From: Tetramitus jugosus
Taxonomy: Eukaryota; Protista; Heterolobosea
Assembly (NCBI GenBank): GCA_937625935.1
Contig: OW569386.1
Span: forward strand, 62,001 to 126,000
Length of the DNA stretch: 64,000 nucleotides
Reading direction: 5' to 3'
Shown here piece after piece: positions 8,961 through 15,710 of the stretch (positions within the stretch are counted from its first letter, which is position 1; each line of letters starts with the position of its first letter). The notes under the pieces were generated by a model that searched no databases, had not been told where the DNA came from, and saw nothing but the letters and a program-made list of their open reading frames with translations. Both the position numbers and the translations under genes were made by a program.

Positions 8961-10970
8961 ATGACTGAAAAGACAATCAACGAAGTAGATAGACCATTAT
9001 CTACAATGGCTTCAAGTGATATACAAGTAAAATGTGAAGACCCAACTCCTCAATCTTTCAGCGATATCAACCACCCTAATTTTGTGCCCACTCCCATGAC
9101 TCCTCTCGATCAAGTGCTGAAGAGGATGCAGAAGGATACCCCCCCATTTGCTGATTTCCTTGGTAATCCAAACCATTTTCCTCTCACCCCAACCCCAACA
9201 ATGCTCGAACAATCCGCAGAATCATCTCTATTCGACAGAGGTCCAATTCAGAGTGAATTAGAAGCTGAAGCACAACGGGTGGATGATAATGAGCTTCATC
9301 GCTTAATTCAATCATTGCTGGAAGCAATCTCAGTGTATGAACGAGAGAATCCTTTGAACCAGGAAGTAAAAAATTTAATTGAGCAGTTAAGAACTCAAAT
9401 GGTTAATGCAGAAGATTCTCTAGTTTTATCCCGAGTTAACAGTCCCTGTGATTTGGACATTGAGAAAGAGGAACCTCGGAACAGTTCTGGTCTGGTTCGT
9501 GAACCTGATCGAACCGATACATTGGATGAATTGAGAAGAGAACAAATGCTACTAGAAATCAAAGTCAAGGATATGCTCGACAGACATAGAACTGGAGACA
9601 GTCAGAATGAAGAAGGCGAGAATAAATACATCCAGTCAACAAATGACTTGAATCCCCCGCAAGATTCAACTCATGTTCCAAAAGGAAATCGGATCTCTCT
9701 GATGATTGAACAACAACCGGAGCAAAAGTTGAAAGATAGCGTATTTTACAAAGAAAGTGTTCGAGAAATGATACCTCAAGTCATGTCCTCTCTGGATCGC
9801 GACTCCCTGGAGAAAGACTTTCCTATTCAACATAAAACGATTAGACAGGAAGAACAGAGAAGAATGTCGTTGGATCTGACATTGAGTGGCTATGATAAAT
9901 CTGGAGTTGATGTGTCAACCATCCAACTACTTCAAGATCGAGAAAGATGTGAATACATCAACACGATACTTAACGATCATTTTCCCTCTCTATACGAGTT
10001 GAAGAAAATGATATTAAATTGTGACATAGAGCTCCGGAGATATCTATCTGTGTTGAAAGATATCCTACCCACAGAACAGGAGGTAGATTATGCGGTTTGT
10101 TCTGTCTGTCACCTGAATCAAATTTCAGAACACTCGATGGGCTTATTTTTGGAGAAGGCAGAAACTAAAGCGGACCAATGGATGTTGATACTGCTCATGG
10201 AAGATGAAGCCACTCCCCATAAAGGGGCACCACAGGAAGCAATACCTATAACACAACAGGCGATCCGCCAAACAAAGCAACTTCGTCACCTTGTAGAAGC
10301 GTGGATCGGATATCACAGATTTCAGTGTCTGTATCCCCTGATTAAGGAACATATCACATGTCTCGAGGAGGCATGTATGGAAATGAAGAATAGTAAGAGT
10401 TTCTTCAAGTTTTTGGGAGTTGTGTTGGCCTTGATTAATTGCTTGTATTCCACTGGAGACAGAGAGCTCATATGGGGATTCCAAATCTCATGTCTGGGAA
10501 AATTGTTAGCAGTGAAGAACGGTGACGAATCAACCTGTCTATTGAACTATATTGACCAATTATGCTGTGAAAAGTATCCAGATTTAAAGGTGGACTCACT
10601 CTTATCTGAGTTGAGTCATGTTCCGAAAGCAGCCAATATTTCACTTGACCTACTTTCTCTCCAAATAGACGAAGTTCAGGACGATCTCCATCAACTAATT
10701 CAGTTCAGAAACGAACAGGTCTTGGAGTGCAACTTTCAGCTCTCCAAATCTTTATGTGCTGATGATAGTCTAAACGAAATGCAAGATCAGTTGGCCAAAG
10801 TTGAAGAGCGCTGGACAAATCTCCTGCAGAACATACGGAGTGTGAGAGAACTGTACTGCGAAAGGGAGTCGGACCAGATGAAAACTTTCCAATCAGTTTC
10901 GCAATTTCTTGCGTCCCTGCAAGCTGCGCACCACCAAAACTCGAGCTATCCATCAACAAATGGGGAATAA
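8961..10970 (+). CDS. Divergent formin FH2-domain protein
   Basis: SKSFFKFLGVVLALINCL...GFQISCLGKLLAVK...CLLNYI...YPDL resembles the FH2 post/coiled-coil region. Confidence 0.7.
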   Translation: MTEKTINEVDRPLSTMASSDIQVKCEDPTPQSFSDINHPNFVPTPMTPLDQVLKRMQKDTPPFADFLGNPNHFPLTPTPTMLEQSAESSLFDRGPIQSELEAEAQRVDDNELHRLIQSLLEAISVYERENPLNQEVKNLIEQLRTQMVNAEDSLVLSRVNSPCDLDIEKEEPRNSSGLVREPDRTDTLDELRREQMLLEIKVKDMLDRHRTGDSQNEEGENKYIQSTNDLNPPQDSTHVPKGNRISLMIEQQPEQKLKDSVFYKESVREMIPQVMSSLDRDSLEKDFPIQHKTIRQEEQRRMSLDLTLSGYDKSGVDVSTIQLLQDRERCEYINTILNDHFPSLYELKKMILNCDIELRRYLSVLKDILPTEQEVDYAVCSVCHLNQISEHSMGLFLEKAETKADQWMLILLMEDEATPHKGAPQEAIPITQQAIRQTKQLRHLVEAWIGYHRFQCLYPLIKEHITCLEEACMEMKNSKSFFKFLGVVLALINCLYSTGDRELIWGFQISCLGKLLAVKNGDESTCLLNYIDQLCCEKYPDLKVDSLLSELSHVPKAANISLDLLSLQIDEVQDDLHQLIQFRNEQVLECNFQLSKSLCADDSLNEMQDQLAKVEERWTNLLQNIRSVRELYCERESDQMKTFQSVSQFLASLQAAHHQNSSYPSTNGE

Positions 10971-11044
10971 AAATTCACTGAATTCGTTGAACCAGTCAAC
11001 CTTCGACATCTCGCTGACGTATCTCATGAAACTTCTCGCATGTT

Positions 11045-11059
11045 ACAAGGGGAGAATTG
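11045..11059 (+). promoter_or_regulatory. Conserved upstream element ACAAGGGGAGAATTG (paralog A)
   Basis: Exact 15-mer shared with 12479-12493 at a similar distance from the ATG (119 vs 128 bp). Confidence 0.45.
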
Positions 11060-11163
11060 GCTTGCGCAGCAAAACCCATCAGCTTTTAACGCGACACCCA
11101 ACCGCCAAAACTCTGCCAAAACATCAAAACAAACAAAACCAAAAACATCTGTATTTTTTAATA

Positions 11164-11838
11164 ATGAGAGCTACCATTATTCTTGCTGTTCTTGTGATCT
11201 TGGCTATCGCATCCCTTGCAACTGCTTACTCTCCAAGAGGACGCAACGTTCCACAGAGAAAGTACCGTGTCAACAGTGATAGAAGCATGCCACATCCTGT
11301 CAGAAGACCATTGGCTGACTTGTCAATCAGGAGACCAGACTGGACCACTACTTATCCAACTTTCCCAACAAGACAACCAGTCTTGTTCAGCGACAAGATG
11401 GTCTACGGCCCAGCTCCAAGATACAACAGAAGACAACCTGTTTACTTGAGCGACAGAACTCTTCCATACAACCCAATCTATACCACCTATCCAATCAGAA
11501 GACAAGACTTGTTGAGCGACTCTGAACTCTTGATCATCAGAAAGGACAGATTCGGCAACATTGTTGGAAGAAATATTGTTCACAATGATGAAGAAGAACA
11601 ATGGGGTGTCAGTGGTAACATTGGCTCTGGTGGTCAATGGAACGCTGGTGGATCTTACACTGGAAGAGTTGGCAACGGTGACTTGAAGGTTGGAGGAAAT
11701 GTTGGCAACGGTGGAAACTGGGGTGTCAATGCTGGATACTCTGGCAAGATTGGAAACTCTGGATCCTACAATGTCGGTGGCAACTACAACCGTGGTGGAA
11801 ACTGGGGAGTTGGTGCTAGCGCCTCTTTCAGATTCTAA
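11164..11838 (+). CDS. Secreted multi-peptide precursor with Gly-rich beta-hairpin C-terminal domain (paralog A, 224 aa)
   Basis: Signal peptide MRATIILAVLVILAIASLATA; repeated ...SD cassettes; DEEE linker; GGNWG repeats; close paralog at 12607; AATAAA downstream. Confidence 0.85.
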   Translation: MRATIILAVLVILAIASLATAYSPRGRNVPQRKYRVNSDRSMPHPVRRPLADLSIRRPDWTTTYPTFPTRQPVLFSDKMVYGPAPRYNRRQPVYLSDRTLPYNPIYTTYPIRRQDLLSDSELLIIRKDRFGNIVGRNIVHNDEEEQWGVSGNIGSGGQWNAGGSYTGRVGNGDLKVGGNVGNGGNWGVNAGYSGKIGNSGSYNVGGNYNRGGNWGVGASASFRF

Positions 11839-12478
11839 ATTGTGTCAAATGTTTGTCGTATTTTGAATAAACAAAGATACAACATGTCTCGCCAAAAGGT
11901 GTGCCTTTTTATTGTTCTCTGCAGTACGCAATAGTAAGTGAAGCTCATGTCGCCAGAAACTTTCTCAAGTCTCCAACAAACGATGGAGAAGGGCTTCTAA
12001 CAATGGGTCCTTGGAGTCTCTGAGATGGGAGAGCACAACTCAATCATGTGAACATGATTGGGCTCAGACATCTTCGTTCACAATGCGGATGGCTGAGATT
12101 GTGATGGTTTGGTGCATAGTATTGCTTCAAGTCAAAGTGACGTGCTTAGTGGATTCAGCCTGTTCTGATTACAGTCTGAATTCCTTCATGAAGCAGACAG
12201 CTATCATCTTCTCCAGGATTAGTCATCTTTAAAAAGAGTAATTGTACACTCATTGCAAAACAAATCCTTCCCAATATCTCCTTCAGTCACTCCTGTCTCT
12301 TCCCAATGAAGAATAACAACCAGATCTGGTTCTGTAAGGCTGGGTGGGGCGAATTCTGAGCTAGAACCCTATCAACTAACGGAGAATAAACAAAGCTCAA
12401 TCATTGGATTCTGGTCAGTCAACCTGCACTGCTTGTCATCGTCTTGTTCAAAAGTTTTTGGAAGCTTGGGGTGGTCTC

Positions 12479-12493
12479 ACAAGGGGAGAATTG
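12479..12493 (+). promoter_or_regulatory. Conserved upstream element ACAAGGGGAGAATTG (paralog B)
   Basis: Exact match to 11045-11059 within otherwise diverged flanks. Confidence 0.45.
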
Positions 12494-12606
12494 TCGAGCA
12501 GCGGGGACCCCACAAACATTTAAAAGTCGAACCAACTGACCCAAACATTCTGAAAAACATCTCAACTAAAACATAACCCAAAACCCTTGTACTTTACTCC
12601 TACACG

Positions 12607-13407
12607 ATGAGAGCTACTGTCATTCTCGCTGTTCTTGTAATCTTGGCTATCGCATCCCTTGCAACTGCTTACTCTCCAAGAGGACGTTATGCTCCACAAA
12701 GAAAGTACCGTGTCAACAGTGACAAGATGCCATACTTTGATGAACCAGATTGCATCTCTAAGCCACCTTCATTCAGAAAGCCAATCATCTTCAGTGATAG
12801 AATGATCCTCAATCCAAACTATCCAAGATCCAGAATCGCAAGAAGACAACCAGCCTTGTTGAGTGATAAGATGGTCTACAGCCCAGCTCCAAGATACAAC
12901 AGAAGACAACCTGTCTACTTGAGCGACAGAACTCTTCCATACAACCCAATCTACACCACTTATCCAATCAGAACTCTACCATACTTGTTGAGTGACTCTG
13001 AATTGATTGCACCAGTTGAATGGGAAGGTAGAAGAATTGGCAACAGATACAGATACATGACTCACGATGATGAAGAAGATGAAGAAGAGAAATGGGGTGT
13101 CAGTGGAAATGTTGGATCTGGTGGATGGAGTGCAGGTGGATCCTACTCTGGAAAGGTTGGCAACGGTAAGGCCAGCGTTAGTGGAAACGTTTCCAAGGGA
13201 GGAAACTGGGGTGCCAGTGGATCTTACTCTGGAAAGGTTGGTAATGGTAACTTGAGTGTTGGTGGCAACGTCTCCAAGGGTGGAAACTGGGGTGCCAATG
13301 CTGGATACTCTGGCAACATTGGTAAGTCTGGATCTTACAGTGTTGGTGGTAATGTTTCCAAGGGAGGAAACTGGGGAGTTGGTGCTAGCGCCTCTTTCAG
13401 ATTCTAA
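12607..13407 (+). CDS. Secreted multi-peptide precursor with Gly-rich beta-hairpin C-terminal domain (paralog B, 266 aa)
   Basis: Same architecture as paralog A with one extra 27-aa Gly-rich repeat; identical C-terminus GGNWGVGASASFRF. Confidence 0.88.
   Translation: MRATVILAVLVILAIASLATAYSPRGRYAPQRKYRVNSDKMPYFDEPDCISKPPSFRKPIIFSDRMILNPNYPRSRIARRQPALLSDKMVYSPAPRYNRRQPVYLSDRTLPYNPIYTTYPIRTLPYLLSDSELIAPVEWEGRRIGNRYRYMTHDDEEDEEEKWGVSGNVGSGGWSAGGSYSGKVGNGKASVSGNVSKGGNWGASGSYSGKVGNGNLSVGGNVSKGGNWGANAGYSGNIGKSGSYSVGGNVSKGGNWGVGASASFRF
13093..13404 (+). repeat. Intragenic ~81-bp (27-aa) tandem repeat encoding GGNWGxxGSYSGKVGNGxxSVGGNVSK
   Basis: Repeat visible in DNA and protein; the equivalent region in paralog A (11602-11835) is one unit shorter. 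Confidence 0.85.
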
Positions 13408-13633
13408 ATTGTGTCAAGTCGTGTTTGAATAAACGAAAATACAACTTTTCATACCCAATCACGCACCTTGTTTGTTGTCACAAAAATATTTTGAGGACTG
13501 TAGATTTTTGGCAGTTGGCGTCATCGTGAGGTTTTTTTTAGAACATGTTCAGATTGTACAGTTCAAGAGATGGCCAGATAAAAGCTGAAAGATCTTGCCC
13601 AAACAAAACCAACGAATCATAGCAAATAACAAC

Positions 13634-14201: not shown

Positions 14202-15710
14202 ATGTTCAAACTCGCACAACTACAAAAGCCAATCATCACAACAACCACAACAGTCATCATCAGACAAAGAACCAACAACGTCATATTCTTCACCTACCAT
14301 CAACAACTCTTACACAACATCATGAATCACATTTCACTCATCAACGTTGGCAACAAGACCTATCGCAAACACAATCACAACAACCTTAACAACAACCTTA
14401 ACAAGAACCGTAACAACAATTGCAATCATGATCAAACAACAGAAGTAGATGAAGAGAATAAAAACTATGAAGATGAACCATACTTGACATGCACAATCAT
14501 GGACTCTCGAAGCACTTTCCTATCATCATCATCATCATCATCATCAATGGTTGCTACTGCAGCTGAGACTGATGATGATCAATATGATGATAATGATACT
14601 ACTCAACAGAGTGAAATTACCACTGTTACCACAACTACAACTACTTCTACTACTGCTGCAGTTTCTGCTAGTGATAAGAATAATGATAGTAGTGTCAGTG
14701 AATTCAAGTTCAAGGATTCTATCGAAGTCGATTCATCCATGGTTCGTCATCTCATTGGCTACAAGTATCAAACAATCAACTCGATTATGAAAAAGTCCAA
14801 TACTCGAATCACTGTATCATCATCTGCTGCACCATCTATGAATACGAATACTACTAATAACAACAATCAACAACATCAACATCAACAACATCATAGAAAG
14901 AGACATCATGTGAAGGAACCCGTGTGGATTCATGCCAATGAGTTGAGTGATATCGAATTGGCAAAGAATGAAATACTTCAATTGATTGAAAGCAAGTTAC
15001 CATTCACTCATTTTCTGAGTTTGCATCTAGTGAATGATCCAACAGTGCACTCCAAGCTCTCTCAGTTCTTTGATGACTTGAAGGTGACTTTTCCATCGAT
15101 TCACAGCACAGTGTACATTTCTCCCAGTCGATTCCACTTTACGATACAAATGCTTCGATTGTCCAATCAGGACAAGATTGATCAGATGAAACAATTGTTG
15201 AATGATGAGATTCAACCCATTATCAATGAACTGTTTTCGAACAATGGTTTTGGTAGTAGTGGTATTGATGCAGTGGAGTTTGATCGATTGGACACGTTTA
15301 GAGACAGACAACACACAAAGTTGTCTCATACGTCTGTTGTGTTCCTTAAGCCAAAGACCAATACAACGTACGATCGTATCATGGAGATGGGCAACAGAAT
15401 CAAGTCTGTCCTGTTAAAGTACAAGTTGATCAATCAAAAGGAATCTCAAGAGTCATTGGTGTTGCACGCCACGGTCATGAACGCAAAGTATGGCAATATC
15501 AAGGGATTTGATGCCGAACAGTTGTTGAACCAGTTTGGAACAATGACTGCTCTCGAATCCAAACTTGGTAACGACTTTAAGGTTCCTCTCACAACTCTAG
15601 AACTGTCAAAGCTCGTACCAAGCAAGACAGATGTGCGAGTCAATGGATTCTATGCAGCGGAAGCAATCATCCAATTCCCTCCACAGCAACAGCAACAGCA
15701 ACAGCAATAA
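14202..15710 (+). CDS. ASCC1: ASCC1-like protein (KH domain + 2H phosphoesterase/AKAP7-like domain)
   Basis: KH: VRHLIGYKYQTINSIMKKSNTRITV. PFTHFLS, followed by two HxT motifs (HFT, HAT). Start codon uncertain. Confidence 0.8.
   Translation: MFKLAQLQKPIITTTTTVIIRQRTNNVIFFTYHQQLLHNIMNHISLINVGNKTYRKHNHNNLNNNLNKNRNNNCNHDQTTEVDEENKNYEDEPYLTCTIMDSRSTFLSSSSSSSSMVATAAETDDDQYDDNDTTQQSEITTVTTTTTTSTTAAVSASDKNNDSSVSEFKFKDSIEVDSSMVRHLIGYKYQTINSIMKKSNTRITVSSSAAPSMNTNTTNNNNQQHQHQQHHRKRHHVKEPVWIHANELSDIELAKNEILQLIESKLPFTHFLSLHLVNDPTVHSKLSQFFDDLKVTFPSIHSTVYISPSRFHFTIQMLRLSNQDKIDQMKQLLNDEIQPIINELFSNNGFGSSGIDAVEFDRLDTFRDRQHTKLSHTSVVFLKPKTNTTYDRIMEMGNRIKSVLLKYKLINQKESQESLVLHATVMNAKYGNIKGFDAEQLLNQFGTMTALESKLGNDFKVPLTTLELSKLVPSKTDVRVNGFYAAEAIIQFPPQQQQQQQQ

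Follow-up and report, generated by a model that had tools for sequence, protein, structure and literature searches.

Genes A and B of Tetramitus jugosus, a bacterivorous heterolobosean soil amoeba, encode secreted precursors that end in a glycine-rich domain, and we tentatively interpret this tail as an attacin-like antibacterial domain, a porin mimic that would attack the outer membrane of bacteria; the interpretation draws on a predicted structure and on analogy with insect proteins. Judged from the sequences in hand, the family is a small, protist-specific group of secreted precursors, and what is new to the record is a protist family with paralogs that extend the A/B-type hairpin unit to porin-sized proteins. 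As far as the literature could be searched, the family is undescribed, and it is absent from Pfam.

The two genes lie in the stretch of 64,000 nucleotides analysed here (the window), part of an assembly (56 contigs, 26.35 Mb) that was searched for paralogs. The window is eukaryotic: it also carries a formin FH2 gene (8961-10970) and an AKAP7/KH gene (14202-15710). A and B form a tandem pair of paralogs with 59% identity, A lacking one Gly-rich unit of 26-27 residues, and the translations of both begin with an apparent ER-type signal peptide. Their features are as follows.

11164..11838, plus strand: gene A, an unspliced open reading frame for a 224-aa secreted precursor, which translates as signal peptide, Pro/Arg/Tyr-rich cassettes (11227-11590), short acidic linker and Gly-rich domain
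11602..11835, plus strand: Gly-rich domain of A, 78 aa, one hairpin shorter than that of B in the alignments
11868-11873, plus strand: AATAAA signal of A; RNA contigs stop at 11883
12607..13407, plus strand: gene B, an unspliced open reading frame for a 266-aa secreted precursor
12607..12669, plus strand: signal peptide of B as read from the translation, 21 aa (MR, a 16-residue hydrophobic core, and A-T-A before Tyr)
12670..13065, plus strand: Pro/Arg/Tyr-rich cassettes of B, each ending in a hydrophobic residue and Ser-Asp (translation)
13066..13092, plus strand: acidic linker of B, eight Asp/Glu and then Lys, abutting the first strand (translation)
13093..13404, plus strand: Gly-rich domain of B, W163-F266, 104 residues, predicted by AlphaFold2 as an eight-strand amphipathic beta-meander
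13144..13376, plus strand: tandem repeat of B, 81 nt (27 aa), 2.8 copies, one unit corresponding to one hairpin
13372..13404, plus strand: last strand of B, WGVGASASFRF, an end like that of outer-membrane proteins (OMPs)
13428..13433, plus strand: AATAAA signal of B; RNA contigs stop about 20 nt further on, at 13453

Near-identical sequence occurs in many public sequencing runs, among them six soil metatranscriptomes from separate studies. In two soil metatranscriptomes, RNA-library contigs cover gene A over 11140-11883 at a depth of 1400-2760 and gene B over 12553/12676-13453 at a depth of 150-330; the flank upstream of A (10900-11087) has zero coverage in soil metatranscriptome contigs, and most of the stretch between A and B has little or no coverage in one soil RNA run. 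Because the RNA contigs are colinear with the genome, A and B are unspliced, transcribed and abundant enough to be assembled from bulk soil RNA, exact transcript ends and expression levels being beyond the reach of assembled contigs.

The same data hold some smaller observations. In the gap between the genes (11934-12590), a contig of depth 825 from one soil RNA run joins 11665-12036 to 12230-12349 on opposite strands, a join that may reflect faulty assembly or an unannotated transcript between the genes; low-depth contigs are also present at 12230-12351. A few sites within the B domain (13193-13194, 13090, 13335) differ between soil RNA contigs and the window and are probably strain variants, and the CC>TT change at 13193-13194 would turn the Ser of one N-V-S-K turn into Phe. 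Genes A and B are identical to each other at 11797-11848 and 13366-13417, that is, over the last 39 coding nucleotides, the stop codon and the next 10 nucleotides of the 3' UTR, synonymous sites included, with about 85% identity in the 120 nucleotides before; this pattern points to gene conversion or to a nucleotide-level constraint on the terminal strand.

The original prediction parsed a 27-residue repeat into strands parted by GG and GNG turns, eight of them in B, and the analysis agrees with this parsing. At 13144-13376, Tandem Repeats Finder detects a period of 81 nt (2.8 copies, 79% matches), and AlphaFold2, given the 106-aa domain with a 13-sequence alignment (A2), predicts eight antiparallel strands (2-10, 13-24, 27-36, 41-51, 54-63, 67-78, 82-91 and 95-103 in 106-aa numbering) with turns at GG/GNG/KGG, at a pLDDT of 86.5 and a pTM of 0.68 that are to be read with the caveat that only 13 sequences underlie the model and that Gly-rich repetitive hairpins may be over-confidently modelled. 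Given the hairpin that it lacks, the domain of A would have six strands.

With the strands placed in this way, the large hydrophobic residues (W/Y/F/V/I/L) lie on a single face in all eight strands of B and none is found on the opposite face, an arrangement equalled by 0 of 5000 within-strand shuffles; the face contrast reaches z = 4.0 against whole-domain shuffles, and when the 13 aligned domains are taken together, 249 of the 416 residues in hydrophobic-face columns are large hydrophobics, compared with 2 of 433 on the opposite face. A sliding-window beta hydrophobic moment of the B domain was not above shuffles (z = -0.29), so the amphipathy becomes visible only once strand positions are fixed. 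Every odd strand of B carries W-x5-Y, the spacing expected for two aromatic girdles. The opposite face is made up of G/S/N/T/K only, and 40% of the hydrophobic face is Gly/Ala. Among relatives, the domain varies in net charge between +8 and -4, and it is therefore not a uniformly cationic antimicrobial. As a separate observation, the Gly-rich domain of B contains four N-x-S/T sequons (the N-V-S of each repeat), and the other 12 aligned domains contain three in total versus about 17 in shuffles; the family, B excepted, seems to avoid N-glycosylation sites.

The predicted B domain was compared with known folds. In a Foldseek search against the PDB, E-values were weak (0.01 upward) and the matches were nearly all membrane beta-barrels, the top ones being, with few exceptions, outer-membrane, mitochondrial or chloroplast barrels. 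The B model fits segments of 18-24-strand barrels at an rmsd of 2.3-2.8 Å, whereas small barrels fit only at 6-9 Å (KdgM, NalP and a designed 10-strand barrel at 7-9 Å) and no 8-strand barrel occurs among the best 50 of 48,161 chains. Since a low rmsd is obtained only with segments of large barrels, the B model amounts to a weakly curved, open sheet that corresponds to roughly a third of such a barrel. The proposal that the hairpins are amphipathic and of the membrane-barrel kind was thus upheld as regards the one-sided hydrophobic face and the barrel fold matches, but not as regards a small closed barrel, and the accompanying idea of a monomeric barrel of OmpA/OmpX size is not supported by the present model. 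We consider a monomeric, closed eight-strand barrel of the OmpA/OmpX type extremely improbable: B does have eight strands, and OmpA and OmpX end in -YRF, which resembles the ending of B, but these fits go to large-barrel segments and paralog A would have six strands only. A mitochondrial or plastid barrel was also considered and was rejected on account of the cleavable ER-type signal peptide and the acidic loops.

Over the whole domain, the best match in the ESM Atlas is an arthropod cluster with Gloverin in 66% and Attacin_C in 16% of its members (TM 0.85 by query and 0.68 by target, rmsd 2.0 Å, 106 aligned residues), both sides of this comparison being predicted models. Language-model features gave 0.87 for Attacin_C and 0.86 for Gloverin, scores too low to be taken as anything beyond a lead. 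Profiles of Attacin_C and Gloverin did not match the full proteins or the 13 domains at E <= 10, and Pfam and NCBIfam searches of A, B, C and P0001 gave no match, for Pfam even at E <= 10; the link to the insect proteins consequently rests on predicted shape and composition. Viral sequences also came up in these comparisons: an unnamed phage cluster of 102 aa in the ESM Atlas resembles the B domain (TM 0.79/0.82, rmsd 1.8 Å), and an unnamed giant-virus cluster of 70 aa has a feature score of 0.89 to it. The BFVD viral library yielded merely weak phage OMP-like barrels, with a best E of 5e-3.

The genome holds five members of the family (A, B, C, D and E), of which the three outside the tandem pair are as follows.

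L003:1078-2100: paralog C, like A and B, with more Pro-rich cassettes (L003:1140-1800)
L005:1501-2763 (G000 C43, near 290.7 kb), minus strand: paralog D, 421 aa
L006:859-1845 (G000 C4): paralog E, 329 aa

Paralogs D and E carry, besides a signal peptide, a small CxxxC...CxxxC segment, which is modelled as a helical hairpin and weakly matches arthropod defensin (E 0.045). Their core consists of 8-10 copies of a hairpin unit of about 19 residues, W-K-V-x-G-N...G-G-x-W-x-A-G-F-E-W/Y, with strongly acidic linkers in between, and a four-strand tail follows that ends as in the rest of the family. In their predicted layout, tight turns would lie opposite long acidic loops, as in outer-membrane proteins, and D and E may be single-chain, porin-sized versions of the A/B design. 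The model of E has 20 strands and matches almost only outer-membrane barrels, although it is a weak model (pLDDT 66.6) whose rmsd to barrels is 8-11 Å. Hairpin units of D-type proteins (L005; P0005, P0008, P0009) are mostly preceded by Asp-Pro (..D-P-E-D-W..), and the suggestion that this acid-labile bond could let hairpins be freed inside an acidic phagosome is pure speculation on our part.

The Foldseek matches of paralog E include segments of the ApoB100 belt, which bear on the possibility that the sheet coats an interface, its hydrophobic face lying flat on a lipid or air-water surface in the manner of hydrophobin or the apolipoprotein B beta-belt. A weakly curved, open sheet with a polar face of small residues would suit such a role; the ApoB matches, however, are few and weak (TM 0.23-0.25) compared with those to barrels, and strands of 9-12 residues with girdle spacing fit the span of a bilayer. 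We regard this explanation as improbable.

When a tail profile was run against 1.84 billion representative proteins, it picked up nine clusters outside the genome at E-values from 3e-32 to 9e-4, and no bacterial or insect relatives. All nine have the family layout and end in F or W; they come, unnamed, from metagenomes and run assemblies, and the contigs of two carry eukaryotic neighbours (kinases, Ras, F-box and CFAP298). A word-index protein search found one relative only, and the matches from a sequence search of the PDB were nothing but chance repeats (gamma-tubulin complex component 6, E 0.04; ribonucleotide reductase, E 0.07). We also rejected the idea that a bacterial porin was transferred recently, given the lack of a bacterial relative in the profile search and the eukaryotic gene structure and context.

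Profiles of bacterial barrels recognise parts of the family. Paralog D passes the gathering cut-off of Porin_4 (33.9 bits versus 27, E 3.8e-8) with a score summed over three repeat stretches in a low-complexity protein, and E nearly passes at 25.4 bits; A, B, C and P0001 have no match to this profile, and one of the 13 Gly-rich domains reaches E 0.029. Other members show weak matches to YadA_anchor (best E 9.8e-5), Porin_3 and Alginate_exp. Because the sequences are repeat-rich and of low complexity and the score of D is a sum, these matches support an OMP-like sequence pattern and not homology. A Porin_4 search of the amoeba's own genome produced no candidates, its first-look filter having probably missed D.

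The same features can be read in a different way, namely that the tail forms a stacked beta-sheet material of the silk or cross-beta kind in a cyst wall, surface coat or adhesive, with the Tyr/Pro-rich cassettes providing cross-links or matrix. The composition of the B domain (Gly 31%, Ser 19%, Asn 11%, and a recurring [G/S]-Y-[G/S] motif), a dyad pattern with one face of small residues as in silk-type sheets, very high expression, the non-conserved charge and the lack of homology to known antimicrobial families are all in keeping with such a material. The dyad pattern suits stacked sheets too, and it is counted against an antibacterial porin mimic, as are the shallow alignment, the variable charge, the Gly/Ala content of the hydrophobic face, the missing sequence homology to the insect proteins, the repeat-summed Porin_4 score and the weak model of paralog E. 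On the other hand, the predicted structure is a discrete meander, its look-alikes are membrane barrels and not solenoids or fibrils, the W-x5-Y spacing and the invariant aromatic end have no obvious role in a fibre, and D and E place tight turns opposite long acidic loops. On balance, we judge a structural material to be unlikely, and the porin-mimicking antibacterial domain remains the reading that we prefer.

The C-terminal end deserves closer attention, since the last strand had been proposed to be an OMP beta-signal. The beta-signal consensus is polar-x-G-x-x-[aromatic/hydrophobic]-x-[aromatic/hydrophobic] at the C-terminus, the last three positions forming its inhibitory core; peptides with this sub-motif block BAM-dependent assembly in vitro, and darobactin mimics only these last three residues (PMC10945584). 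In B, the strand W-g-V-g-A-s-A-s-F-r-F alternates exactly, as had been stated, and closes with a terminal Phe and a Phe at -3, both of which are shared by A. Among the 21 family members, the terminal residue is aromatic (F or W) in all and the end is [aromatic/hydrophobic]-x-[aromatic/hydrophobic] in 14, but Gly at -6 is present in a single member, A and B having Ser at -6 and Gly at -8, and the full consensus is found in just one. With Gly at -6 absent from 20 of the 21 despite the aromatic end, the ending is OMP-like without being a canonical beta-signal; the part of the claim that concerned the aromatic terminus and the sub-motif therefore survives, and the part that equated the strand with the beta-signal does not.

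If the resemblance were functional, the amoeba proteins would imitate unassembled OMPs down to the C-terminal signal: the last strand would dock on BamA strand 1 or on other readers of OMP C-termini, and the BAM complex or the C-terminus sensors of the prey would either insert a foreign pore or be jammed, much as by darobactin and beta-signal peptides. Such mimicry could explain the shutdown of outer-membrane protein synthesis that insect attacin reportedly causes, an old observation that has gone unexplained. The frequencies of the aromatic end and the sub-motif, the inhibition of BAM-dependent assembly by sub-motif peptides, the precedent of darobactin, and the weak recognition of members by the YadA_anchor and Porin_4 profiles would fit this mechanism. 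However, besides the missing Gly at -6, the sub-motif carries little information and is expected in any membrane-type C-terminal strand, and the mechanism leaves unexplained how a domain of about 10 kDa would travel from outside to the lateral gate or the periplasm. We thus hold mimicry of the beta-signal to be quite improbable.

Upstream of the Gly-rich domain, the precursors vary. The cassettes are about 20-25 residues long, each closing with a hydrophobic residue and Ser-Asp, and their copy number differs among paralogs and relatives; C and the outside relatives P0001, P0002, P0004 and P0010 share the design. No Pfam match was found for the cassettes, and an Atlas feature search of residues 22-150 gave no usable match. 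They recall insect proline-rich antibacterial peptides and the layout of P-domain plus G-domain in diptericin and attacin C. One might then suppose that small peptides are the products, either the Pro-rich cassettes or the single hairpins of D and E, with the Gly-rich tail as a carrier or pro-region. The recurring Ser-Asp ends and acidic spacers of the cassettes, and the acidic linkers, often with Asp-Pro, that flank each D/E hairpin unit, are of the kind that such a precursor would have, but the tail is the sole part conserved across the family (tail-profile E-values down to 3e-32) where the cassettes vary freely, and dibasic cleavage sites are missing around the hairpins. A precursor of small peptides is accordingly very improbable, and we return to the tail as the putative active part.

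For A and B we infer processing, oligomerisation, membrane insertion and an antibacterial role, in a sequence of steps that could run as follows. After removal of the signal peptide, the precursor would probably be cleaved near the acidic linker; in all relatives, acidic residues precede the conserved W-x-V-x-G-N start in the alignment. The freed Gly-rich domain would fold as an amphipathic antiparallel beta-meander of eight strands in B and six in A, its W-x5-Y face mimicking the two aromatic girdles of outer-membrane proteins and its chain stopping at the Phe of an OMP-like strand. Since the sheet is too flat to close alone, it would either join with others, two to four in all, or enter edge-on. 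[quoted passage not shown] For a Hermetia attacin, the published prediction is a porin-like oligomeric barrel, and the protein was shown to damage the outer membrane of Pseudomonas (PMC10690985); an oligomeric barrel in the amoeba proteins, which would parallel that prediction, is plausible.

We suggest that the family is best seen beside the insect glycine-rich, outer-membrane-directed antibacterial proteins, on the strength of its predicted shape, and that it is either convergent with them or too remote for detection. To our knowledge, the glycine-rich antibacterial class has until now been an insect matter, and here a protist family shares its predicted shape although no homology can be detected. 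The action of attacin, gloverin and diptericin has been unclear for decades. The repeat architecture exposes design rules, namely a hairpin unit, aromatic girdles, an aromatic end and paralogs of 4 to 20 or more strands, and the family offers a simple, expressible system in which to ask whether such sheets form outer-membrane pores and whether the OMP-like end matters. A and B rank among the amoeba's most visible transcripts in soil RNA; should they prove antibacterial, they could be an important means by which soil protists kill Gram-negative prey, as well as a source of outer-membrane-active scaffolds.

Among known systems, the G domain of gloverin and attacin (PF10793 Gloverin; PF03769 Attacin_C) comes closest to A and B in being secreted, Cys-free, Gly-rich and about 100-130 aa long, in a predicted structure that superposes over the whole B domain, and in having a pro-region upstream. 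Diptericin shares the G domain, and the pro-region is Pro-rich in diptericin and attacin C. In contrast to the insect proteins, the A/B domain shows no detectable sequence similarity to them and consists of recent 27-aa tandem repeats, its host is a heterolobosean amoeba and not an arthropod, and the N-terminal part of the precursor holds several cassettes. It is possible, though we would put it cautiously, that the domain is the amoeba's analogue, in structure and in function, of the glycine-rich antibacterial domain of insects; the present data do not distinguish convergence from very remote homology.

The barrels of Gram-negative bacteria (Porin_4, PF13609; YadA_anchor, PF03895) resemble the B domain in their dyad amphipathic strands of 9-12 residues, tight turns, girdle spacing and aromatic end. 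They differ in that A and B are eukaryotic genes with an ER-type signal peptide, a poly(A) signal and no bacterial relative, that the beta-signal Gly and a Porin_4 match are absent from A and B, and that B is predicted as an open eight-strand sheet as opposed to a closed barrel. A single-chain porin barrel has 16-18 strands, and the family models have eight in B and, in the weak model of E, 20. Darobactin and the beta-signal peptides have in common with A and B the C-terminal [aromatic/hydrophobic]-x-[aromatic/hydrophobic] end, whereas A and B present a 10-kDa domain that lacks the full eight-residue consensus. Finally, the anchors of trimeric autotransporters have four strands per chain where B would have eight, yet these anchors, like the predicted attacin homotrimer, share with B a short sheet in each chain that would close only by oligomerisation, a likeness accompanied by the weak YadA_anchor matches.
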